Shown: positions 224 to 16,872, counted from the first letter of the stretch. The stretch: 64,000 nucleotides of DNA from Adineta vaga (GCA_021613535.1 CP075496.1:1984001-2048000); one strand, 5' to 3'. A program made the numbers and translations. The notes: a model not told the origin generated them from the letters alone.

Positions 224-1518
224 TTAAACAAGAGGATAACTGGCAGCAGTAGCAATACCACATTGGTTACGTTTGTTACGGCTCATTTTGATATAACCTG
301 AGTCACCCCATCCTTGTCCCCAGCTAAAGACAAAGATCCAAATCATTAAATATGTTATGTATAAAAAAGTTAATTAATAATAATTACCTGTTTTTAACGA
401 GCCAGTAATCTTTGCCTGAATCGGTACCATAACCAACAGCAAGAACACCATGATCAAGTCGAACTTGTGAACAGAAGATTTCGTTATAAACTATAGAAGA
501 ATTTAAAATTTCAATGAAGTTTTCATGTCTTTGAAAAAAAACATACCACCGTGTTTGTATAATTGAAATGATGTATGACCAGCATCAATAGCAACTGAAA
601 TTGGACCAACAGTAGCAACAGCTTGTTGAAGAGCATTTTCATCTTTTGTTGTAATATCAGTAAAACCAGTATCGGTAGCACCAACATTTTCAGATTTGAA
701 TCGGCATTGATTATCAACAGCTTCATATGGATATGAATCTTCAGTATCAATACCATTGTTATCTTTGATGTATTGAAAAGCTTGATCCATTAAACCACCA
801 TTGCAACCCATGTTACCTTGTTTACCTGAACAATCAACTAAGTTTTGTTCGGAGAGTGAAACGAGTTTGCCAGATTGTTTGAAGTGTTGACCTTCAAGTG
901 AACCAGTGGTTGAGAAAGCCCAGCATGAACCGCATTGACCTTGATCTTTAATTGGTGTTACATAACCTTTGTCACGCCAGTCTTTTAGAGAAAGAAAAAA
1001 ACGTCATTCAAATGAATTAACACTACAATTGATCTTCATACATACCAACGGTATCTGGTAATTTAACTTTGGGATTGAATGTAAATGTATGACGATCTTG
1101 ATTTCTTTGTCCTCGCATTGTAACATTATAACCATTCATTACTTTAACGAATTCATTGATTGTCTAATACAGTAAAAGATAAATGAAGATGATTTGTAAT
1201 GAAAGTTATTTAATTTACCATATCAGCGTATTTGTTCATTCCAAGCCAATATGTGTGAACACCAAGATCAGCTTGAAGATTATGATCTTGAACTTTTTTC
1301 AAGTTACCTTCCCATGTTGCTCGACTAAAATTTTCCGATAAAATCGATCGAAATAATTTCACACGAAATTTTTCTTACCGAACATGTTCTTCAGCATCAG
1401 AATATCGTTTATTATTGGCTTCTTTCCATAATTTCCAATGTTGATTTAATGTAACATCAAGAGCTAATGTACAACTAAGAGCAAGTGCAAGAACGGCAAG
1501 TACCGAAATGGATTGCAT
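224..1518 (-). CDS. CTSL: Cathepsin L-like papain-family cysteine protease (multi-exon)
   Basis: Spliced translation gives a signal peptide ([19 protein letters not shown]), an ERFNIN-type propeptide, [11 protein letters not shown] (catalytic Cys), [18 protein letters not shown] (His), YWLVKNSWG (Asn) and C-terminal [12 protein letters not shown]. Confidence 0.96.
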
Positions 1519-1632
1519 ATCTATATTTTATCATTCATTAAACATTTCTTTGATCATCTCAATTTTCACTTACCTTTATTTATTACCAAAGAATAAAAAG
1601 AATGTGTGAGTTAATTCAAAATTCACAAACGT

Positions 1633-1639
1633 TTTTATA
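1633..1639 (-). promoter_or_regulatory. Putative TATA box of cathepsin L
   Basis: TATAAAA on the minus strand about 60 nt upstream of the donor of a 5'UTR intron (GTAAGT near 1574). Confidence 0.4.
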
Positions 1640-1929
1640 CTAAAATTTTATCTTCAATGCCACGTGTGTCTATATTATTATCTCTCACGGTAAAACGCGC
1701 TGTCACTATAGTCTTGCCCAGTCATTACTTCATGGTTATTTTTAGTTGTTCTAGATTCGTTTTTGTTAAAGCAATTCAAATTAGGTCAATTTATCATCCT
1801 CGTCATAAACATGAAGGCACATTTATAGTTGTTTTATTCGTACCCAAGAAAAAGAGAAGAAAATAGAAAAGAAGAAGAAGAAAACTCTAGAAAAGAATCA
1901 CTTTGTCCCACATGTAGAAAAACATTCTT

Positions 1930-3500
1930 TCAAGATTCAAGAACATTATCGAATGAATATGCATTTGTTGCTGAACCACCGTGTCCTGCACTACTCAATG
2001 GTTCCATCGGTGATCGTTTTGATCCACCATTGTGATCTAACATTCGTTCCATTTGTCGAATAGTATGTTCATTTTTAATCATTTTATCTTGTAATTGATG
2101 TCGTTCATAACCGAGATTCGTTAGAACAGAATCTTTTTCAATTAATAATTCTTTAATTCGTTGATTTTCAGCTAAAGTATTTGCATGATTCTTTCGTAAT
2201 TGTGTTAATTGATCTGTTAAACCCATCAATGCATCTTGCATTTTCATTGCTTCTTCATTTTTCATGAAAGCATCAACTGATTTCAATTTTTCCAATTCTA
2301 AAGCTAAACGTTTTTGTTTAGTATTTACAGAAACAAGTTGTTTAGCAAGAAGATCATTTTCTTTTCGATAACCATTCTAGAAAGACAAAAGCAAATGAAT
2401 GAAAAGTCAATATTGATCTTTAACTTTCAACGTACAACATATTCAAGTAATTGTTTATTTTCACCATTTAAATGATCACATTGTTTACTCTGAGCATGTA
2501 ATTGTTCCATTGATGATTTGTTTTGTACTTGAAGCTCTTTTAATTTTTGCATTAAAAGAACCATTTTATTCTTACTATCAGCTTCCAAAGCATCGCGTTC
2601 ATTTTTGATTAAAGTAAATTTCTCTTGTAAAGTAGCAGCATTTGCTTCCGAACTGGAAAAAGCAAAAAAAAAGATATGAAATAAGAACATTCCATTCGAT
2701 CTTACCGTCTTAAATCGACTTGTAAATTATTTGCACGACCGGTTAGAAATTCGATTTTTTCATCGGCTGCTTTTTTTCCTGCAGTTAATTCGTTGACTTT
2801 CGAATTCAAACGTGCAACTTCTTTTTCTGATGAATCACGATTGAAGACAGTTTTATTATATTCATCTTTAAGACTTGATGCATCACGCATAGATTTTTCT
2901 AAATTCTGTTTTGCAATAAAATATTTCTCTTTCAATAGTTCAAGTTCATTGATTAAAACTTGGTTTTGTCCTTTCAAATCTTCGTTGTTTCGTGTTAATG
3001 TGTCAATCATTAAACGCATTTCACGATCGGCCGCTTTGAAACTAAGAAAAACAAATAAAAGAAAATGTTTTTCCCATTTGTTTTGTTTATTACCGTTCTT
3101 CCATTCGACGATAATCTTCGACAAGTTTTTTCGTTGCTTCATATTCACGGGCTAAACGTTCGAGTTCAGTTTTTAAAGAAAGATTATCTTGCTCAAGTTT
3201 TTGATATTTTGTACGAATTTCTCCGAGACGATTACGTGCTAAATACATTAATTTATCGTGTTTATCTTGTAATTTCGTTAATTCATTTCCCAAGGTGCCA
3301 TTTTCTTCCATTAAACGTTCATTTTGAAACCATAAATCATAATTTTCAGCTTTAAGTTGAATTGCTTTGGAGATAGGTTGTTTGCTCATAATATTAATTC
3401 CAGCATTTCGATTCACTACATCTTGAGGTGCTTTCGGATTAGTCATACGATATTCAAGATCAGCAAATGTATCTGCGCGTTCATCTATATGATTAGCCAT
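1930..3500 (-). CDS. Long coiled-coil protein of unknown function (4 exons)
   Basis: Four ORF segments join in frame across short GT-AG introns; heptad-rich E/K/L/Q composition throughout. Confidence 0.8.
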
Positions 3501-5080
3501 GTGAAGAAAAACCTAAGTAAATCAAATCTAATGAGTATTAAATATATATATTCAATCAAGTAGGATTTCTTTTTGTTTTGTTTTGTTTTATAATTCTTTT
3601 TTAGCGATGAAAATATATTTAGATTGAATATTCAGTTGATAATTATTGAAATCACCTACCTGTCTCTATGTATTTCTCTTTTCTCGTAGTTTGCACACGC
3701 ACACCAAAAACTAATTTAAAAAGCAAAACTCTCAATTTTCTTTTCTCTTTCTCTCTCTCTTCCTTCACTCTTTTTTTTGTATATAACGACCATAGTCAAT
3801 GAGTGAATTGCTGCTTAGTTGCTGCAAATATTCAAACAAATCTTTTAAAAAAAAAGAAATTCAACGGTTTGTTGAGAAAAAGAGAGAGAGAGAAGAGAAA
3901 AGTGAAAGGGTGTCGATGGTAGTCAAAAACAAAAAAGCAAAATACACAAACGTTTAAATGGTTCTCTTAAGTAAAGTGATAGATTTCATCCTATGACATC
4001 AACAGGACAAACGATGAAATTTCGTCAAGAATGTTAAACTAAAAAAACAGAAATTTGAGTCGAAAGAAAAAGAATGAGTTTAGACAATGAGAACAATTGA
4101 TGAGTTAGGAAGAGAAATGTCGGATGTATTCAACAGTTTCATGTCAAAAAAAGATCGGAAATTGTCGAAATGAAAAATTCTATTTCCTTTAAAACGAATG
4201 TCAATAATGTTAAATCTTCATTTCTCAAGACAACAGATTACAAATGCAAAACAATATTAAAAAAGAAAGAAAATAGTTCAAATAGCTATTAATCAATTGT
4301 GTAAGAAGAATAATGCATATTTTATGTAAGAAATATAAACGTAGATAGATGAAAGCTTTTTTCTTTTTTGTCTTTGAAAGAAAAACATTGTATTCAATTC
4401 GAGTTTTTAAGAGTAGTTTACTTACCATGTTTGGATCATTTTTGTTCTGTGAAGTATCGTTGATCAAATTCACATTCTTTTATTAACATTCGGTGACATG
4501 TGTGATGAGAATATTACTTCTATGGTATCAGACAAGAAATAAATCAATTCTTTGTTCCAACAGAAAAAGTTTTAGTGATAATTTCATTCTTTGTAAAAGA
4601 AGAAAAAAAAGGAAAGAAGAATGTCAGTTAAAGAAACTTTACATGATTGAATATCTTGAGTGTAATCAGTAGTAAATCTAAATAGTTTTTATGAAATAAC
4701 CTTCAATGAAAACTTGATTGTAAAGTGAGAATTTTCATGAGACAATAGTTGAAGGACAAGTAAAAGTTTGAAATTTTGAACGATTCTCTGAGTGTATTGT
4801 AATATCGAAATCAATATCAGACATATTTTGCATTTCTTGTCTAAATTATCAATTAGAATAGTTAACACATTGTTTTCTCACAATTCTTTCATGATAAAAC
4901 TCTTTTCGATCTTGTACTTTTGAGTTTTCCATTCATCGATATAAATATTGGATTCAATTTGAATATCAATTCTATATTTATTAAAATCTATATGAGTCAT
5001 ATTCTTTAAAGAGAGAAAAACAAACGAATTCAATAGAAAATATGTCTAAAAGAAGAAAAAAAACGAAAGGTCAATCACAT

Positions 5081-6100
5081 TTACGAGTGCATCTCATTAG
5101 TTTGTTCATTATTATCATTTTTCTTTGTTATTTCCTGAGCATCAAATACACGAATTAATTGTTTATTTGTATATGTTTCATCTAATTCTAAGGATAATTG
5201 TGTAAATTGTATTGATTCAATAAGTTTTTCATTCACATCTGGCATTGTCTGTAAATTATCAGATAAATCCATCAGATCTTTATCAGTTATATTTTTAGCA
5301 AATAATTTCTTTTGACCTGTACGAAGTAATGAATTGAAAAAATCTAATTTTTCACCATTATCAAAACCATTTCCTGTCCAAAATGCTTCATCATTTGCAT
5401 GTTGTCGTTCATTTAATATCTGTAAAGCTTGATCACGTTGTTGTTCAATATTATGAATAAATCGTTGAACATACATTTGAATACGTTGACGAATTTCATC
5501 GTATTCTTCTGCTTTTTTATCCATTTCCAAACGTTTCTTATTAATTAATTCAATACGAGATTCGAGTGTATTCAATTGTAATTTACTTTCACGATGAACA
5601 TCTAATAAATGTGTTCGTCGACATGTTTCACATAGCATAAAAGCACAATGTTTACAAATCTTTAACATTTTCAATAGACCACATGTATGACATCGTGCAC
5701 GATAAATTCCATTGATTTGATTTTGTTGTTGATCACATGTTGTTGGTTTTGATGAATCTAATGCTTCACAAAGTTGTTTAAGGATTGGATTAATAATTAA
5801 CATCGATTCGAAATGTTCAAATGAACGAAAATTCAATTGATATTTACAATATGGACATAGAATGAAGTTCATTGAAGTCGTGGAATTAATCGTCGTATTT
5901 TGAGCATAATCAAGTAAACATGAACGACAAAATGAATGTGCACATGGAAGACAACAAGGTGATGTCATACGAGAAAGACAAATACCGCACATTAAGATAT
6001 CATTGAGTAATTCATCTTTGATTTTCGATGAACTGGATGATGATGATGAACATTCAGAGATATTATCAGGAGAATCAGATGGTGTATAATTAGAAGCCAT
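5081..6100 (-). CDS. RING finger / B-box-like / coiled-coil (TRIM-like) E3 ligase, intronless CDS
   Basis: C3HC4 RING (CGIC...CAHSFCRSC...CPYC), a second Zn motif (CHTC...CKHC...LCETCRRTH) and then a coiled coil; 339 aa open frame. Confidence 0.85.
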   Translation of the reverse strand: MASNYTPSDSPDNISECSSSSSSSSKIKDELLNDILMCGICLSRMTSPCCLPCAHSFCRSCLLDYAQNTTINSTTSMNFILCPYCKYQLNFRSFEHFESMLIINPILKQLCEALDSSKPTTCDQQQNQINGIYRARCHTCGLLKMLKICKHCAFMLCETCRRTHLLDVHRESKLQLNTLESRIELINKKRLEMDKKAEEYDEIRQRIQMYVQRFIHNIEQQRDQALQILNERQHANDEAFWTGNGFDNGEKLDFFNSLLRTGQKKLFAKNITDKDLMDLSDNLQTMPDVNEKLIESIQFTQLSLELDETYTNKQLIRVFDAQEITKKNDNNEQTNEMHS

Positions 6101-6763
6101 AAGAAATTAATCTGAAAAATAAATAACGAAAAAGAGCCAAATGTAATCAGTAAAGAATGAACGATAAATCTTTTCAAGATCATATCAATTACTACGTGAG
6201 CAGCAAGAATAGAAGAAGTAGAAGAAGAAGAAAATGTTGTTCGTATCAATATTACTTTCTCAAGGAGTTTCTAATATTTTCATCTCAATTTCTTTTTTAC
6301 TTTCACCTCACGTCTTCTCTTTCTTATATGAAATCAAAACGATGTAGGCAAAAGAAAAACAATAAATCGGTGTCCAATAGATTTCTTTCGATCATCGTTA
6401 TCGTTCGTGAAAGACGATAGAAATCCAATAATGACAATGAATAGAACATGTATCGTGTACGCTATTTCATTAAATGTCGTTGTGGTTGTTGTTGTTGTTG
6501 TCGTTTTCTAGATCATATTAAAAAGGAAGACATCACGTGTATATATAAACTCGGAAATCAATCAGTTCATTTTATAGGGTAGAAAAAAAAACCTTGGCAA
6601 ACAACGTGTTGGTGATAAAGTCAAAAAAATTCTATTCTTTTACGCATACAAACAGAAAAAAATACTAGAAATATAAGGAGCAAAAGAAACGTATAATGAA
6701 TGTAAATTTCTTTTTTTTTGTCTAAAATAACTAAATGTGCGAGCTTAAAATGAGCTCTCGCAC

Positions 6764-7871
6764 TCACTGTGTTTGTTTTTGACTGAGAGGATGATCTTCA
6801 CCTTTCATTAACTTGTACATTAATTGACCCATCTTTGCAGGTGAATCACTCACGTTCACTTTAGCATCTTTTAATGCTTGAATTTTACTTTCAGCACCAC
6901 CGGATTTACCGCTGATAATAGCGCCAGCATGACCCATACGACGACCGGGTGGAGCAGTTTGTCCAGCAATAAAAGCAACGACTGGTTTCGCTTTTGAACC
7001 TTTATTATTTTGTTGAAGATATTCAGCAGCTGCTTCTTCAGCATTACCACCAATTTCACCAATAAGAATAATACCAGTTGTAGCTGGATCATTCAAAAAG
7101 ATATCCAAGCAATCAATAAAATCAGTACCATTGAAAGGATCACCACCAATACCAACACATAATGATTGACCAAGACCAACTTGACTGGTTTGATGAACAG
7201 CTTCATATGTTAATGTACCACTACGTGAAACAATACCAATTGGTCCAGGTCGATGAATATGACCAGGCATAATTCCAATTTTACATTTACCCGGAGCTAA
7301 ACATCATTCCTATGAGTTCGAAGTCAATATTTCAAATAAACTTACCAATGACACCTGGACAATTAGGTCCAACAAGACGAGATTTATTTTGTCTTACCAA
7401 TTGATGTTTAACTTTAACCATATCATGTTGAGGAATACCTTCTGTAATACATACAATTAAACCAATACCAGCATCAATAGCTTCGAGAATAGCTTCTGCA
7501 GCTCCTGGTGGTGGAACATAAATAACTGTTGCTGTTGCACCGGTTTCTTTCATAGCATCATGAACATTTTTAAATACTGGTAAACCTAAATGTTTTGTTC
7601 CCGCTTTCTTTGGACTAACACCACCGACTAATTTTGTTCCATAATCAAGTGCTTGTTGTGAATGAAATGTACCTTGTTTACCAGTAAAACCTTGGCAAAT
7701 TACACGAGTATCAGCATTAATATATAAATTTTTTCGTGTTGAATCATAAATTGATTTATCATAATTCGTATGTGAACTTGCTTGTTGACTTGAATTAACA
7801 ATCGCACTTGTTTGAATAAAACGACATGATGATGTCGAAATTAATGACGAAAGAAAACGTTTGGATAACAT
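6764..7871 (-). CDS. SUCLG1: Succinyl-CoA ligase alpha subunit, mitochondrial
   Basis: Presequence [35 protein letters not shown] and RRMGHAGA (phospho-His); one intron near 7297-7346. Confidence 0.97.
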
Positions 7872-7988
7872 GTCAACAAGATAGATTTTAGATCTAAAAT
7901 AAAAATATAATAGACTAGAATAGATTTCTAAACATATCGCAAAATTGAAAATGAAATTTATCGATTTATAGAAGTTAAACAATTGATT

Positions 7989-9007
7989 TTAAATTTGTTT
8001 TCGAGCTCCTGATTTTTCATATTGTAATTTTTCGTCTGTTAATGGAACATAGATCACACTCATATGTCGTTGTTCATCATATGTTCCATCAGCTTTTTTA
8101 TCATATGTTATCATTTCTTGATTGAGTTTATTATTTCCAACTGGCACAACAAGTCGTCCACCAACTTTTAATTGTCGAATTAATTCGTAAGGTGTATCAG
8201 GTGCAGCTGCACCGACATGAATAGCATCATAAGGTGCTTCAGCAAGATATCCATGTCGACCATCACCTTTATGAATTACTAAACTTCCCTCATCAATTAA
8301 TTCTTTATTATGTTTTTTAATATTTCGAATTGATTTATCAACAAGTTCTTGAATATGTTCAATACCAATTGCTTTTCCATTTGGACGAACTAATCGCGCC
8401 ATACATGCAGTTAAATATCCTGAACCAGAACCAATATCAAGAACTTTTGCTCCTACAAATCGAAAATTAATAATCAATTTTCAATCTGATACAAAAACAA
8501 TACCAGGTTGAAGTTTATCTTTCAAAATTTCTAATCCAAAACCATGCATATGTGGTGCACTAATGACAATAATATTCTGCAATTATCATTCAAAAAAGTA
8601 CGAAGTTTTACCTGATTGTCACCTGCATCAAAAGAAATCAAATACAACTGATCATGAATATACAGAGAAACTTACGGCATAACCGACTAAATGAAAAATA
8701 TAGGATATACGTAGTTTTGTTTAGAAAGATAGAGTTTTTGAATTACTTGATTGTGGTCGATCACGATAAGCATCGGTTTTATCATCAGTAAAATCAGCTC
8801 GATCGATCTGTAACATTGCATTTTGACACGTTCATTAGTGATGAGTCCATTTTTGTATAAATTTTCAATTAATTCCTCATGTGTTGAACCCGATGAACGC
8901 CAAGCCATTTGTTGATTGAATGCTGTTAATGGTAATGAATGGTATGAAATGAGTAAAACAGCAATTAAAATTGAAAATAATGAAGAATAGAATGAATATG
9001 AGAACAT
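7989..9007 (-). CDS. PCMT1: Protein-L-isoaspartate O-methyltransferase (PIMT) with N-terminal hydrophobic extension; one apparent 1-nt deletion near 8822
   Basis: MAWRSSG (ATG 8908), QSIGYAVTISAPHMH, LDIGSGSGYL, GDGRHG, APYDAIHVGAAA, YVPLT. Restoring one A in the run at 8821-8824 gives VKNAMLQIDRADF. Confidence 0.93.
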
Positions 9008-9775
9008 AAATATGGACTTATCTAAAAACGAAAATGTGAATATTCAATGATGGTCTCACAGATATCTTTAATTCTATTTTACTTTTCTGTGATGACCAAT
9101 TTCAGTTAGAAGAAAAGTGATAACGTATATAAATAATGTGAGAGTATGTCTTGCCACACCCAACTTCTAACACATTACTCTATACATTAAAACTGGTTAT
9201 GAATTATTATTGTATGTTGTATCCCATCAGTTTTCATCTCGAAAACCACTTAGTTACCATTAATTAACCGTACCATAACGATCTAAGATTTTCTTCTAAT
9301 TTATAATTTTCTTAATAAATTCTTTTCTAACTACAAATATTTCCGTAAAGTTACGTTAGTTTCCGCCAAAACAATATCTCACGAAAGTTTTCCATCTATC
9401 ACACAGGAATCATTTTCTTTATCTCTTTAGAAATATTTTCCCATTATAATGAAAATCTTTACCTATACATATCAATCGATTAGTGGCTTCTGGGAGTGGC
9501 TTCAGCTTCACAACGTTTTTTGTTCCGGTTTTGATTGTTTATGTTTATGTTTTTTCTTATCCTCTTCTTAAAAATAAACCATTCAGAAGCAAGTTGTACC
9601 TCTGCTTCCATCTATCGATCGATGTTTTCTAACCATTTTGATTCATATCAAATGCCCATCTATCCAACCGAAAAATACATACAACTATTTTTCTTCAAAA
9701 CAATGCTGCGAGTTGTGATGTTAATTTCGATCGTTTTCATTTTAGATTTAGATCTTCTTTTCTTTTTCAAACAAA

Positions 9776-10203
9776 ATGACACGAGTGAAATGTTCACAAC
9801 TTCGTGGTAAAAAACCAGGTAAAGTCTTCAAGATGCTATTGTTTTTTCAAGAATGAATATCAATATTTTAGATGAAATTCAAAAGCAATTAACTGAATTA
9901 CGTCAAGAATTAAATACCTTACGTGTCGGAAAAGTCACAGGTAGTGGCGGAGCACAAAAATTAGGTAAAATTCGTAATGTACGTAAATCCATTGCTCGTG
10001 TACTTATTGTTCGAAATCAAACGACCAAAGAACATTTAAGACAATTATATCATGGAAAAAAATACAAACCAAAAGATTTACGTCAACGAAAAACACGTGC
10101 TATTCGTCGGTTGATGACACCAAAAGAACGATCGGTACAATTAAAGAAGATTCAACGACGCCAATGCGCTTTTCCAAAGCGTACCTTTGCTGTTAAAGCT
10201 TAA
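9776..10203 (+). CDS. RPL35: 60S ribosomal protein L35 (uL29)
   Basis: [14 protein letters not shown]|[14 protein letters not shown]...VRKSIARVL...[16 protein letters not shown]...FAVKA*; intron 9819-9871. Confidence 0.97.
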
Positions 10204-10337
10204 GGAAGAAGAAAAACACTCATTTTTTGTGTTTTTTTTGTTGTTGTTGTTGAAATGTTCGTTTATTAAAGATCTAAAACGAATAAAATAAGAAGAAAAA
10301 AGAAAAATTAGAAAACACATTTATACGTGTTTTAGAT

Positions 10338-12221
10338 ATGCCAAGAAAGAAACAAGTCACATTTCAGAATAGTATTCAAGGAAAATTTATTCCGAGAAGT
10401 TCATCAGCTTCAGGTTTGCCGATCACACTTCATATCATTTGTTTTTATTCTTCATCTTTCATACTTAGTTTTTCCAATGGGAGCTCATGATAATCGATAT
10501 AATGCCAAAATAGCACAATTTCTCGCATCATCATCATCATCATCAGCTTTAACTGATGAAAATAAAATTGTTTCAACAGAATCTTCTCAAGAAAATTCAC
10601 AATTATCGTCCAATGATTTATCAAGTATTCATTCGAATTTATTTCATCGACGTGTTGTTACAATGATTGAAACATTAAGAAAACCAAATCATAATCTATC
10701 ATCTTCTCATGTAGAACATAAATCTCAACCAATTACATTTGGTCAATTGAGACAAGCAACGATTCTTGAAGAAAAATCGATTTCTCATCAATTACCAATT
10801 AATTTCGAAGGAAAACAACAAAAAACGTTGGCATCATTTGTAAGAGATAACACATCGGATTTATCTGTGGTCGAAACGGTCAAATCATCAGTAAAATTTG
10901 AAACAGATGAACCAAGATTACACTATTCACCTTCATTAGAAAAATTATTCGAAGAACAAAATGCGATTTCACAAATGAAAAAAGAACAGAACTCATCATT
11001 AGTCAATGATGACGTTCATTATTCTACTGAACAAGTACCAAATTCATTTCGATCTAATTCTACATCAAGTTTTTACATTCATTCATCTGTACCAAGATGG
11101 GATTTATCACAAAGTAATCAACAAATCACTTCACCTCCATTATTAATAAACGAACAGAATAGAAATCGACCACCACCACCATCCTATTCATCATCAATAG
11201 CAAATCATCGTTCAATAACTCTATCAGGTATGTAAACCAAATTCGAACAAAACATTTCTTTATCAAATAAGTCCTTTATATACTTCAGCATCCCATCGGT
11301 CTCAAAGTCTCGCTCGTCCACCTATCTCATCATCCAGGTCTCATCATTCCTATTCTCAACCATCTACTGAACCTTTTACGAGTATTTCTCTTCCATGTAT
11401 GTCAACATCAACAAATCCTATTCGTTCACCACCTCCGCAATATCAATCATCAATATCAACAATTTCATCTACGAACAATCTACCTCCTCCGTCTCCTTCT
11501 ACGATTAGCAATACTAATTCATTAGCTGGATTTGATCGTGAATTTTCACGTTTACTTTACGGTAAAGATTCGAATAAAACACGACGTAAAAGACAAAAAC
11601 GTAAAGCTTACAGTGATCCTGTTAAGTAAGATATTGAATAAAATACAATCGATATAAAAACATTCTTTTCTTCTAGAGAATGTGTCGAAGAAGCAGGTCG
11701 ATCATTTGAAAAACATCGTCGTCGAGTTACTACGCATTTAAATAAAACTGATTCAGCTGAGGACGATGATGATCATCATGATCGAATTGAACCAAATCGA
11801 TCATTAAATCTTAATTATGAATTAAATTTTCTTCCAAGACGACGTAATCGTCGACAAGCTAAGTAATAATGAAATGATTTTTCTCTCTCATTTTTCAATT
11901 TCTCTCATATTTTCTTTCAGTTTTCTCAAGAAAATACTTATACCAGCAAATCCATTATTAAAACAACGTATTCCTTCGTTTTTACGTGTTTATTCTCAAG
12001 CATCTTCATACAACGACATTCTTCTTCAATGGCATTTATTTCATATATCAGAACTTGAACTCTTTTATGCAATGATGATACGATTGTATAAAAACGAAAA
12101 TCTCGCTCGTGTTCAACTTTATGAAATCTATCGAACGGCTTTACTTTCAGCACTTGCTGAAAAAACATCATCGAATACTGATAATGAAACGAGAGCTTTA
12201 ACAACATTATTAAAGATCTAA
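10338..12221 (+). CDS. SAV1: Salvador-like SARAH-domain protein lacking WW domains (5 exons)
   Basis: C-terminus LIPANP...IPSFLRVYSQA...DILLQWHLFHISELE.FYAMMIRLYK.E...VQLYEIYRTALL matches the Salvador pre-SARAH/SARAH pattern as I recall it. N-terminus MPRKK...QGKF resembles Sav1 MLSRKK...QGKY. All five exons splice in frame. Confidence 0.75.
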
Positions 12222-12295
12222 TTGCTTTTCTCTTCTTCGTTTTCTTTCGCTTTCATTATTTCCGGTGCTAATATTTTCAATTTTTTTTAGATTAA

Positions 12296-13623
12296 ATGAA
12301 TTTATTAGAAGACATTCTAAAGAAGAATCCTCATGTTCATATACATGATGATAAACATGCGTATGTCAATGATATCATATGTTTATTAATCAAAGATGGA
12401 AGAAAGATGTTACATGTTGTAGCAGATTTTGATTTTACATTAACAATGTATGAAAAAGATGGATTAGTTTTACCGTCAACATTTGGTGTAATTGAATCAA
12501 ATGATTATATAAAAGTAAAAACAAAAGATTTTCTTTAAAATATGAAATTGTTTGAAAAGCAGAAGAACAAAAGTATGATGGTATTAGAATGTAAAATGAG
12601 TATATAGATAAAAAATGACATTCTTTCATGATTTTACTTCGACTTTCAAATACATTTTTAAACGTACGATTTCTATGCGTTTCTTAACAGTCATTCCATC
12701 CTTTCATTTTGGACTTCGATCATGATATCTAAACACTTGACAAACTTGTTTGAGGACGTTCGCAACAGAAAATACTCAGTTCTACATTGACGACAAAGTA
12801 GATATGGTTATCTTTTTCAAAATTTGACTTTCTAATTATGTACGAGATCAAAACGACTTCTTTGTACACTATGATTTATTTAGCTACCTGATGGTTCATT
12901 ACTTCGTGATAAATCATCTGAATTATATGGCAAATATCATCCAATTGAAATTGATGTTCAAATGAATGTATCGGAGAAGATACCCTATATGATTGAATGG
13001 TGGCGTTCTGCTCAGACTTTTTTTGTTTTATCAAATTTAACTAAAACGATCATACGTGATCTTGTTCATCAATCTAAAATGGAATTAAAACAAGGTGTTC
13101 GTGAATTCATAACTGAATTATTAACTAGTCAAACTCCAATTCTCGTCTTTTCTGCTGGTCTAGGTAACATTTTCTTTACAAAATAACATCTTTATCTTTC
13201 TTATCTAACGAAATTTCAGGAGATGTTATTCAATATTTTTTCGAAAAACATATTCCAGAATTTAAACATAATCATGAATCTTCTCATATTGTTTCGAATT
13301 TCATTCATTACGATAATCAAGGCAAAGTAATTTCATTCAGTGAAAAATTAATTCATTCATTTAATAAAAATGAACATGAAATACATGATACACCTTACTT
13401 TCAAACAATTACCAATCGACCAAATGTTATTTTACTTGGTGATACACTCGGTGATATTGGAATGACAGGTGGAATGAAAAATTTAAAACAAATATTAAAA
13501 ATAGGATATCTCAATCATAGTACACCAGAGAAATTAGAAGTTTATAAGAATTTTTATGATATTGTTATATGTGATGATCAAACATTTGATATACCAAATG
13601 CAATTTTAAATGCAATTCAATAA
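12296..13623 (+). CDS. NT5C3: Cytosolic 5'-nucleotidase III / pyrimidine 5'-nucleotidase (HAD family)
   Basis: VADFDFTLT (HAD motif I), KYHPIEID, EKIPYMIEWW, FSAGLGD, VSNF, IHSFNKN, ILLGDTLGD, KIGYLN, YDIV. Confidence 0.95.
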
Positions 13624-13713
13624 ATGATTTTTCTTCTTTTTTTGTTTATTTGATAGAAATGAATCGATTTGAAGAAATAAACTAAACTGGTCATTTTGTC
13701 TTTTTTCAGATCA

Positions 13714-15262
13714 ATGGATAAGCAAAAAAGAATAAAGAAAGAAGTATTTATAACTGAAGATGAAGAAATCATTATTGTCAAGAAAAGAAAACCATTAATT
13801 GTGAAAAAAATGTAAGAAATTCTTTGTTCTTTTTTTGTTGTGGTTTGTAATCGAGTCAATTTATAGTATTGGTCGATGTGCATTGAGTGTTGTTTTCTTT
13901 ATAATTTCATTTATTGCCTTAGCACCACTTTTGCTTCAGTTATATGGTGATGCCATTCTTACTAAAATGCTTTTTCAAACTTGGTGTAATCATTTATTTG
14001 AACGATGATTTGAAAAATAAAAATTTCCTCTTCTTTTAGCTCGATATTATCCATGGATTGATCTAACCAAACCAAATGCATTTAGTTTAAATGGAGTAAA
14101 TATTTATGAACAAACAGAACCCGATGTCAAAATTGGACTTTGGTAAGAAGAGTATTATATGGAGTTTCTAAAGAGATCATTCTTTCGTGTTAATTTCTGA
14201 TTGTCTTTCCTCATAGGTACGTAGTCCCATCATCAGTTGTAATTGATCATAGTTTACCAACTCTTGGTGATCATTTAAAACGTTATATTAAATCTACTGA
14301 TCAACCAATAATCATGTATCTTCATGGTCAAGATGGAACTAGGTAAATGAAGTATATAAACAATTTGAAATTATGTTTTTTTCATTTAGAGCAACACATT
14401 ATCGAGCAAATCATTATCGAATGATGACTGCATTTGATAATCATATAATTGCACTTGATTATCGTGGTTATGGTGATTCAACTGGTACAGCAAGTGTTCA
14501 AGGTGTTGTTCATGATGTTTTACATGTATTTAAATCTATCCGTCAAGCTTGTCCAGAAAATCCTATTACTATTTGGGGACATTCAATGGGCACAGGAGTT
14601 GCCTCATGGGCAATGCATCATTTATTTCAAAATATTACGCGTATGAAAATAGTCTTTCTATTTGGAAATGAACATTAAAATCTTATAGATTATAAAAAGC
14701 CATCCGGACTCGTTCTTGAAGCTCCATTTTATAATACATTACAAGGATTAGTTTCATATCCACTTACTCGAGTAAATATCTCTCTTCTCGTCAATTACAA
14801 ATTATTTTTCTCAATAATTTAGATCTTAAAAATCAATCCCTATTTCATGCAAGCTGCACTCGATGCATTAACAATAGTAAAACTTGATTTTCCCAATAAT
14901 GAAATGTAAAAAAATCGAATTAAATTCATTCAATCCTATTCATTCTTACATATTCTAGTGTTTCATATCTTCCATTACCAATTGTAATCATTCATGCTGA
15001 AGATGATGCAGTCATTCCATATTTTCATGTTGAATTAATTCAAGATTATGTTAAACAACATCGAAATGAAAATTTACCTAAAATACGTTTTGTTACTGTT
15101 CCACGTTCTGCTGCTTGTGGTCATAATCATATTTATTCTTATCCAAAATTTCAAGAAATTGTCAGGTAAAAGTTCACATATTGATCGCTTTTTATTCTTG
15201 TACGAATAATTTGATTTTCTTCTAGTGATTTTTCTTTTCTTAAACGTTCTTCGCCTACTTAA
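13714..15262 (+). CDS. ABHD12: ABHD12-like membrane alpha/beta hydrolase, paralog A (triad intact)
   Basis: N-terminal TM, YLHG, DYRGYGDSTG, WGHSMGTGVA nucleophile elbow, LEAPF, IHAEDD and CGHN. Confidence 0.88.
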
Positions 15263-15402
15263 AACAAGTTTAATTTGTTCAATGATGATTGTCTTTCGCA
15301 GTGTGATATTTTAGTCATTTAATTATCAATATTTTCGTTTTGTAATTTTTATCATAAGCAATAAATTTGTGTGCTTTTATTTTTCTAGATAGAAAAACTC
15401 AA

Positions 15403-16872
15403 ATGGAAGAATCTGATTCTGAACCTATAATTAATATTGAAAGATCTTCTCAACGATCAAAATCTTCGTAAGAAACAAAAATTTGATTACTAATAAATTA
15501 TTTCTTTAAAAAAACACACAAATAGATCAATAATGATCAAAATCGGATTAATACTCGGTGGTTTATATATTTTTGCTTCCATTCTTATTCCAATTATTCT
15601 TCTTACTTATCCAACAATTACTTCACATCTTGTTTTTATGAATAAAAGTTTGTTTCGAATTCATATTCATTCTTCTTTAACTTTTTATGTATGTCTAGTG
15701 AAAACACAAACGAATTTTACTCGTCCAGAATCCTTAGGTATTGATCGTGTATATAATTTTTATCTCAATATTGAATCACAAGTGACACTTGGAATATGGT
15801 TTGTTCGTTAATCGATTAAAATCTTAATTAGACGAATTTTTCTTCAGGCATTTTCGTTCTCCATTAATACAAGATCAATACTTTGAAGATGATGAAGATT
15901 ATTTTTCCAAACATTTGATATCAACTATTCCAATTGTGATCTATTTTCATGGATATGCATATGATCGGTAGAGAATTCATTCTTACAATTGATTGATTTT
16001 CTAATAGGAAATATTTAGTTCGTTAGTAACTCGTCGTGAACTTTGTCAACGATTACGTAATGAATTAAAATATGATGTGATTACATTTGATTATCGTGGC
16101 TTTGGTGATTCAACTGGTGAACCAACAGAGAATGGTTTAAGTAAAGATGCTCAATTTATTTATAATTGGTTACAAAAATTAAATAATAATCAACGAAAAA
16201 TTTACTTATGGGGTCATGCACTTGGTTCAGCAGTTGCTTCACAATTAGCAGCACAATTATCACAGAATGAAAGTCTGTTTTTGTCTTACAATGGTAGATT
16301 CATTCTTAAATCATGTATTTGTTTCTATTAGATAAAAATCTCGGAGGTATTGTCATGGAAGCACCATTTATTAATATTCATCAAGCTTTATTAACTCATT
16401 GGTTATCTTTAGTGAGTTATTGATAGAAATCAATCGATACAAAAAAAGAACCCTTTTTCTATTAGTTTTTTCGTTGGCAACCATGGTATTATAGTTTAAC
16501 AGAGAAAGCTTTACATAAAAATAAACTTTCTTTTGAAATACGTCATCATCTATTGAATCTCAATTGTCCATGTGTACTTATCCATGCTGATGATGATTTT
16601 ATTATTCCATATATTCATTCGAAACAATTATTACAAATTGCTCTCAATGCTCGAACTGATAATAAACAAAAGAAGAAATTATTTCATTTCACTATTGATA
16701 TGATATCATATCATCGATCTGGTTACGGACATCAACGAATTTTTCAAGCACCCAAATTAATCTCAACATTAAAGTATAGATAATTTTACTATGAAAAATA
16801 TAAATTATTGATGTTTACCCTTTTTTTAGAACAATTCTATTCGAAGAAGATTTATCAACTCAAGGAATTTAA
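15403..16872 (+). CDS. ABHD12: ABHD12-like paralog B with nucleophile Ser->Ala (GHALG)
   Basis: TM, YFHG, FDYRGFGDSTGEPTENG, WGHALGSAVA, MEAPF, IHADDD and GYGH; exon layout parallels paralog A. Confidence 0.85.

Follow-up and report, generated by a model that had tools for sequence, protein, structure and literature searches.

Five closely spaced genes of Adineta vaga as a candidate operon resolved by spliced leader trans-splicing

Are five genes that follow one another on the same strand at intervals of 74-140 nt transcribed as one unit and resolved into separate mRNAs by a spliced leader (SL) that is trans-spliced to them, or are they independent genes in a compact genome? This question is raised by a locus of the bdelloid rotifer Adineta vaga (GCA_021613535.1; contig CP075496.1, here C4), whose genome comprises 100.8 Mb in six contigs with a GC content of 31%. 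The window, i.e., the whole stretch of 64,000 nt that was analysed (C4:1984001-2048000), contains head to tail on the plus strand RPL35, a gene referred to as g2, the NT5C3/UMPH-1 gene (g3), and two ABHD12-like genes (g4 and g5), with the closest named protein relatives in Rotaria and Didymodactylos. A preliminary description, made from the sequence alone, had read this cluster as an operon. We consider it reasonably likely, though far from certain, that the cluster is an SL-resolved operon with little or no intercistronic sequence, of the type known from Ciona and from the SL1-type operons of Caenorhabditis elegans, with some doubt about the full membership of RPL35. Genes (from ATG to the end of the stop codon) and gaps are as follows, with a stroke marking the presumed splice point:

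9776-10203, plus strand: RPL35; two exons, intron 9819-9871.
10204-10337, plus strand: gap 1, 134 nt; ATTAAA at 10265, AATAAA at 10282, TTTTAG/AT with the AG at 10334-10335.
10338-12221, plus strand: g2; five exons, 552 amino acids (aa).
12222-12295, plus strand: gap 2, 74 nt; TTCCGGTGCTA at 12260-12270, TTTTTTTTAG/AT with the AG at 12289-12290.
12296-13623, plus strand: g3 (NT5C3/UMPH-1); three exons.
13624-13713, plus strand: gap 3, 90 nt; AATAAA at 13676, TTTTTTCAG/AT with the AG at 13708-13709.
13714-15262, plus strand: g4 (ABHD12-like); nine exons.
15263-15402, plus strand: gap 4, 140 nt; AATAAA at 15360, CTAG/AT with the AG at 15387-15388, second AG at 15391-15392, g4 poly(A) site at 15392-15397.
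15403-16872, plus strand: g5 (ABHD12-like); eight exons.

The gene models of all five, once spliced, are open reading frames, and the coordinates, the common orientation and the gap lengths of 134, 74, 90, and 140 nt given in the preliminary description are exact to the base. The same applies to the pyrimidine-rich acceptor AGs, which end at 10335, 12290, 13709, and 15388, i.e., 2, 5, 4, and 14 nt upstream of the respective ATG. In gaps 1, 3, and 4 an AATAAA is situated ahead of the acceptor as described, with 46, 26, and 21 nt, respectively, between its end and the AG, so that the layout of a poly(A) signal followed by an acceptor is real; no canonical poly(A) hexamer occurs in the 74 nt of gap 2. 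A YYYNAG at most about 14 nt upstream is found for 7.2% of the 2,823 ATGs of the window (both strands), and a YYYNAG followed by AT for 1.1%. Due to this rarity, the chance that four out of four downstream ATGs carry such an acceptor is about 1e-5 to 1e-8. All spacers separate genes of the same strand and stay below the limit of about 250 nt applied to SL-resolved operons, in the window as well as in its duplicate (ohnolog) block and in other bdelloids.

Thirteen GT..AG introns of the five models, 47-370 nt long, were confirmed by joints found in the contigs from four public sequencing runs, which are therefore RNA-derived. The reading of these contigs left out the repeat at 10222-10307, and gap 1 upstream of its acceptor is thus uncovered. 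None of the 15 listed cis joints (four runs; one further joint is not displayed) leads into 10335, 12290, 13709, or 15388, in agreement with the claimed lack of a donor for the four acceptors. Instead, leader sequence is observed at two of them. Unaligned letters ACTTACCAAG are located immediately 5' of 10334 in run X14 and represent the tail of the SL at the g2 acceptor, and unaligned letters CTTACCAAG immediately 5' of 12289 in runs X5 and X14, which belong to two different studies, represent it at the g3 acceptor. Both junctions read ...CCAAGAG/AT, because the genomic AG coincides with the last two bases of the leader. According to depth arithmetic, the g2 contig of run X1 has 5 extra letters past exon 1 at the g2 acceptor, and 12289 is the common start of the g3 contigs from X5, X13, and X14.

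The source of these letters is present in the genome. ACTTACCAAGAG followed by GT occurs 53 times compared to 2 times for a control, and the corresponding SL RNA genes are approximately 100 nt long with the exon TGCTTATTACAACTTACCAAGAG. At least 53 copies are distributed over C1, C2, C4, C5, and C6; most form divergent pairs separated by 167 nt, and C5 has clusters near 9.88-9.93 Mb and 10.91-10.93 Mb. Among the commonest copies (30 loci fetched), exon variants comprise the first base and, in addition, a single change in one truncated-looking copy, which has TTAAAACTTACC within its exon. The exon matches the published rotifer leader GGCTTATTACAACTTACCAAGAG of 23 nt (PMC3795323, Table 1), and it is this leader that the g2 and g3 acceptors receive.

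The only gap in which the upstream mRNA has its 3' end mapped is gap 4. A g4 contig of run X5 covers 15224-15397 and continues with 12 A's; the start of the tail lies in 15393-15398 and is not exact, since AAAAA is also the genomic sequence at 15393-15397. Polyadenylation of g4 thus occurs 4-9 nt past the AG at 15387-15388 and directly after the second AG at 15391-15392. Cleavage and polyadenylation take place within the spacer (g4 poly(A) after 15397; AATAAA or ATTAAA in gaps 1, 3, and 4), and the upstream poly(A) site of gap 4 borders on the downstream acceptor. Due to this overlap, transcription of g4 must cross the g5 acceptor, the g5 precursor must start inside the transcribed region of g4, and one precursor molecule cannot give both mature mRNAs. 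Furthermore, a single contig of run X1 with a depth of 92.5 contains the g4 joints 14905>14959 and 15163>15224, is unbroken from 15224 to 15467, thereby filling the whole bin 15250-15449, and proceeds via the g5 joint 15467>15526 into 255 further bases of g5. This contig is a spliced dicistronic g4-g5 assembly and is suggestive of co-transcription. A 3' contig of g3 reaches 13697, likewise inside a gap. Most contig ends were rejected as RNA ends, since several are situated exactly 30 nt from a heterozygous single-nucleotide polymorphism (SNP) and represent artefacts of the assembly graph, e.g., 15396 with the SNP at 15426 (g5 starts in X13 and X14) and 13867 with the SNP at 13897.

A poly(A) site of this kind has a counterpart in Ciona, in whose operons the acceptor AG of the downstream gene is followed by the poly(A) of the upstream one (PMC1488885). 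The rotifer cluster resembles these and the SL1-type operons of C. elegans in several respects: one SL serves monocistronic and operon genes, the upstream AATAAA precedes the downstream acceptor by a few tens of bases, the poly(A) site lies at the acceptor AG or beside it (in this case ...CTAGATAG and then the run of A's at 15392-15397), and upstream and downstream mRNAs from one precursor are mutually exclusive (PMC1488885). In contrast to Ciona, the junction is mapped for one of four gaps here, the distances of 74-140 nt extend from stop to ATG since they include the 3' untranslated regions (UTRs), and the cluster is headed by a ribosomal protein gene that is probably trans-spliced itself, whereas ribosomal protein genes of Ciona are mostly not trans-spliced. 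An invariant AG/AT at the acceptors distinguishes the rotifer from both Ciona and the SL1 type. With SL2-type operons of C. elegans the cluster shares co-oriented, unrelated genes about 100 nt apart and trans-splicing close to the ATG. Unlike in the SL2 type, no second, operon-specific leader was found among the 9-10 junction letters visible at g2 and g3, which correspond to the leader tail and match the shared SL exon, and beyond the acceptor no Ur-like intercistronic element is evident.

Taking the cluster as an SL-resolved operon, RNA polymerase II would start in the spacer of about 720 nt that RPL35 shares with the divergent PCMT gene and would transcribe through several cistrons. Each upstream mRNA would be cleaved and polyadenylated within the gap of 74-140 nt, and the single 23-nt rotifer SL would be trans-spliced at TTTTAG/AT, 2-14 nt before the ATG, to provide the capped 5' end of the downstream mRNA. 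For g4 and g5 we infer the use of the leader, as we do the co-transcription of all five genes from one promoter.

The arrangement with its tight spacers has outlasted an ancient genome duplication and is shared among bdelloid families. An ohnolog block on C1 (~9.958-9.966 Mb, minus strand; exons placed by local tblastn) contains an RPL35-like gene, g2, g3, g4, and g5 in the same order. The gaps measure 84, 142, 122, and 125 nt and all end in YnAG/AT 4-10 nt before the ATG, and AATAAA is present in gaps 1, 3, and 4. The encoded proteins are 37-76% identical to those of the window, the gap sequences no longer align, and collinearity ends after g5. In Rotaria sp. Silwood2, PCMT on the minus strand is followed by RPL35, g2, g3, g4, and g5 with gaps of ~147, ~108, and ~130 nt, and two introns are expanded to ~2 kb despite the short gaps. 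Public gene models of this Rotaria (L035-L037) fuse NT5C3 with both ABHD12-like genes into products of 612 or 1,126 residues, likely because the spacers are so short. The neighbourhoods are also retained in seven to nine contigs of environmental bdelloids, which comprise the whole cluster in case of L048 and parts of it in case of L049, L051-L054, L058, and L059, with gaps of 73-225 nt. Thus, the gene order recurs in other bdelloids, i.e., Rotaria, L048, and the partial contigs, with the exception of the RPL35-g2 neighbourhood treated below. Across these lineages introns range from absent to ~2 kb, while the gaps stay within 73-225 nt.

The acceptor is the only element kept in every gap. Presumed AG/AT acceptors of the window end at 9745, 10335, 12290, 13709, 15388, 7894, and 6112. 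Considering the window, the ohnolog block, L037, L048-L054, L058, and L059, AG/AT was observed at 27 out of 27 gap acceptors, whereas the cis acceptors of these genes show it in 5 out of 22 cases (p = 2e-8 in a Fisher test covering the first 23 acceptors). This suggests that TTTTAG/AU may be a specific signature of leader acceptors. For gap 3, AG/AT is found in 9 out of 9 lineages and the remainder of the gap is unalignable, whereas gap 1 additionally aligns from AATAAA onward.

A number of observations weigh against co-transcription of the whole cluster. The preliminary description had placed the SL at all four acceptors, and the leader tails bear this out for g2 (10335) and g3 (12290); at 13709 and 15388 it is not seen in the four runs, where g4 exon 1 is without contig cover and the g5 starts are SNP artefacts. 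Since the cover is missing or the contig begins at a SNP bubble, this lack proves nothing either way. The bridging contig of X1 falls short of proof, because contigs can merge overlapping separate transcripts, and none of the contigs displayed for the four runs extends across gaps 1, 2, or 3 (10222-10307 of gap 1 excluded). Contig depth, which is a poor measure of expression and is used as a caution only, amounts to ~630-9,900 for RPL35 versus 10-50 for g2 (in round figures ~2,000 versus ~20), a 50-200-fold difference; g4 contigs are deeper than those of g2 and g3, and the depth ratio of g4 to g2 varies from ~2 to ~10 depending on the run. Control that is partly independent would fit these depths. 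Contigs of g2 end at 12258 or 12274, and positions 12275-12288 of gap 2 are without cover in three runs. The flanking genes are syntenic in L048, too, i.e., the RING gene across 663 nt (~725 nt in L048) and the short-chain dehydrogenase (SDR) gene downstream of g5 across 271 nt (~272 nt in L048). Due to the conserved linkage of these flanks with larger spacers, gene order alone is weak and not specific to operons. RPL35 does not adjoin g2 in Didymodactylos (L038) and in L040-L046; on account of this absence, the head of the cluster is less conserved than g2-g3-ABHD12. Finally, the reverse strand of TTCCGGTGCTA in gap 2 resembles an ETS site and could be a promoter element.

Several of these points would be accommodated if the genes were independent and merely tightly packed, with weak promoters inside the 3' ends of their upstream neighbours and short outrons replaced by the SL, the layout reflecting a compact genome. 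We regard this explanation as rather unlikely. It agrees with contig depths that differ up to ~100-fold and ratios that shift between runs, with the missing cover at 12275-12288, with the conserved, ETS-like TTCCGGTGCTA in gap 2, and with the presence of the leader on more than 50% of the mRNAs in bdelloids (PMC1925144). Moreover, AG/AT near the ATG is also present at the RING gene with its spacer of 663 nt; as it occurs at genes with long spacers, the acceptor alone does not mark an operon. On the other hand, the gaps also contain the 3' UTR and the poly(A) signal of the gene upstream, and in gap 4 the poly(A) site lies past the g5 acceptor. In every lineage the spacers measure 73-225 nt, whereas introns and outer spacers vary up to ten-fold, and outside the acceptor the gaps are unalignable, which is unexpected for gaps that contain promoters.

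The conserved, ETS-like element of gap 2 deserves separate consideration. The GC-rich 11-nt sequence is kept in the ohnolog block (C1 9962948-9962958) and in L053 (~610-622), approximately 40 nt after the g2 stop, and L048 and Rotaria retain TGCTAA alone. As a general promoter motif it was rejected, since 32 genomic matches compared to 10 for a control show that it is not common. We lean towards a role as a 3'-end element rather than a promoter element, because it tracks the g2 stop and not the g3 acceptor, a spacing that likewise speaks against independent genes.

The position of RPL35 in the proposed operon is less clear than that of the genes downstream. The preliminary description implied a simple capped first cistron, and this does not hold for RPL35, which is preceded by an acceptor of its own:

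9023-9739, no strand assigned: spacer between PCMT (minus strand) and RPL35, ~720 nt, presumed bidirectional promoter region.
9740-9745, plus strand: candidate SL acceptor of RPL35, TTTTAG/AT, 30 nt upstream of the ATG.

According to depth arithmetic, RPL35 contigs begin at 9744 (X5) and 9746 (X13), and the same TTTTAG/AT is situated upstream of RPL35 in L048 and Rotaria. L057, an intron-less RPL35 contig from a Joint Genome Institute (JGI) environmental sample, reads GGCTTATTACAACTTACCAAGAG/ATATTCGATCAGACAATG and thus contains the full 23-nt SL; the contig is spliced and folds back on itself, its source is a bdelloid with an RPL35 that is 85% identical, and no downstream gene is present on it. 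Except for L057, all contigs with relatives of RPL35 and NT5C3 exon 3 that were retrieved to look for RNA spanning several cistrons are intron-bearing genomic DNA. RPL35 is therefore probably trans-spliced itself at the acceptor ending at 9745, from which it follows that the promoter should be located further upstream, in the spacer of ~720 nt. No other stretch close to the cluster would be long enough to accommodate a conventional promoter, and we presume for this spacer, in terms of both position and activity, a promoter shared with the divergent PCMT, which has an acceptor-like TTTTAG/AT at 9022 on the minus strand. The distance between the ATGs of PCMT and RPL35 is ~870 nt here versus ~4.6 kb in the ohnolog block, i.e., it differs five-fold.

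Due to its high abundance and its apparent trans-splicing, the membership of RPL35 in the same unit is subject to some doubt, and RPL35 transcripts may mostly be terminated before g2, with read-through alone feeding the downstream genes. Taken further, RPL35 could be an efficiently terminated unit of its own, and g2-g5, g3-g5, or g4-g5 a smaller operon supplied by rare read-through or internal promoters, e.g., one in the unusually long g3 intron of 369 nt, similar to the hybrid operons of C. elegans. Such an arrangement appears unlikely to us, and less plausible still than fully independent genes. It would explain the 50-200-fold drop in depth after RPL35 and the deeper contigs of g4 relative to g2 and g3, and contigs of low depth are indeed located within the g3 intron (12569-12913). 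The loss of the RPL35-g2 link in Didymodactylos and some environmental contigs also fits, as g2-g3-ABHD12 is linked wherever a contig covers it. This is opposed by the conservation of gap 1, which from AATAAA to the acceptor aligns among the window, L048, and Rotaria and shows the highest conservation among the four gaps, by the survival of the RPL35-g2 linkage in both ohnologs and in Rotaria, and by the lack of promoter evidence for any internal site. An operon resolved by the SL, with RPL35 as an uncertain member, remains the reading that we prefer.

RPL35 (uL29) itself is well supported by Pfam Ribosomal_L29 (E 3e-12 on exon 2; Pfam and Atlas queries consisted of single exons), by an identity of 83-89% to rotifer RPL35 proteins, and by its intron joint in the RNA contigs. 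The ohnolog RPL35 (C1 ~9965163-9965579, minus strand) is intact, approximately 51% identical to the copy of the window, compared to 83-89% for RPL35 proteins from other species of bdelloids, and shortened by a deletion of 7 residues; judged from this divergence, one of the duplicates appears to be evolving fast.

The gene g2 encodes a serine- and proline-rich protein of 552 aa with two PPxY motifs; three of its four introns were seen as RNA joints, and orthologues occur in the ohnolog block, Rotaria, L048, L053, and L059. Hallmarks of SAV1/Salvador are WW domains and a C-terminal SARAH domain. No Pfam family was matched by the g2 exons, neither at E 0.01 nor at E 5, and the best scores in the protein Atlas (at most 0.87) belong to unrelated bacterial clusters. 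The identity as a SAV1-like scaffold of the Hippo pathway, assigned in the preliminary description, was consequently dropped. Just 5' of the g2 acceptor, a short inverted repeat, ACAC...GTGT, is found in the window (10318-10335) and in L048 (~5279-5299), with the version CACAT...ATGTG in Rotaria (L037 ~10580-10600). It could form a small hairpin or could simply represent the branch-point region.

In case of g3, Pfam UMPH-1 is matched by exon 2 (E 1e-22) and exon 3 (E 7e-41), and the introns were seen as RNA joints. The g4 protein has an N-terminal membrane helix, the nucleophile motif GHSMG, and Pfam matches to Hydrolase_4 and Abhydrolase_1 on an 84-aa exon, and seven of its introns were seen as RNA joints; the g5 protein likewise has an N-terminal membrane helix and matches Abhydrolase_1 (E 1.5e-11). 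An assignment of both to the ABHD12-like alpha/beta hydrolases is plausible. The nucleophile motif of g5 (~16225-16240, exon 16019-16272) is GHALG and has an alanine at the position of the catalytic serine, compared to GQSLG in the ohnolog and GHSLG in L048. This copy of g5 may be catalytically dead, or GHALG may be an allelic or assembly variant.

On both sides of the cluster further genes were considered. The SDR gene (17144) was rejected as a sixth cistron, since its spacer measures 271 nt, no acceptor is located near its ATG, and it keeps its place in L048 but not in the ohnolog block. On the opposite strand, PCMT (~8907-7989, minus strand) is followed by SUCLG1, encoding succinyl-CoA ligase alpha (from 7871), after a gap of 117 nt (7988-7872), which ends in TTTTAG/AT (AG at 7895-7894) 22 nt before the SUCLG1 ATG. 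The two genes are 112-135 nt apart in Rotaria and L048. PCMT and SUCLG1 form another operon candidate, which is transcribed away from the RPL35 cluster on the other side of the shared spacer.

The nearest phylum with documented operons is that of the chaetognaths, represented by Paraspadella gotoi (PMC12460157). Genes less than 250 bp apart, SL addition to downstream genes, housekeeping genes including ribosomal protein genes, and the lack of an operon-specific leader are common to both systems; leader and lineage are different, and the chaetognath evidence is genome-wide and includes Iso-Seq, in contrast to one locus and assembled contigs here. By the operational rule applied to chaetognaths (genes less than 250 bp apart and one SL-bearing gene; PMC12460157), the cluster counts as a validated operon. 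For bdelloids, leader addition was described by Pouchkina-Stantcheva and Tunnacliffe in 2005, with a 23-nt leader that is the same as here and with SL RNA genes likewise about 100 nt long, and, as far as that work is represented in PMC3795323 and PMC1925144, no operons were described. Operons and polycistronic mRNAs were unreported in rotifers according to Wenzel et al. 2021 (PMC7986045). The 2025 chaetognath paper lists rotifers among lineages with trans-splicing and operons, citing only work on trans-splicing (PMC12460157), and no later published rotifer operon was found in a full-text literature search.

It is tempting to speculate that the locus exemplifies a genome-wide feature. We give about even chances to the view that SL operons occur throughout the genome of bdelloids, contain hardly any or no intercistronic sequence, rely on one leader and a near-invariant TTTTAG/AU, and have been retained from before the genome duplication. 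If so, a single bidirectional promoter region would drive the RPL35 cluster and PCMT-SUCLG1 as two operons, and gene models of bdelloids would have to be split in many cases, among them the fused Rotaria model of 1,126 aa. Rotifera would become a further animal phylum with operons, next to nematodes, tunicates, flatworms, and chaetognaths. A rotifer operon bears on whether SL trans-splicing predisposes lineages to operons and on whether operons are shared with chaetognaths within Gnathifera. With four junctions, a poly(A) site overlapping an acceptor, and two ancient duplicate copies, the locus is an accessible test system for these questions.

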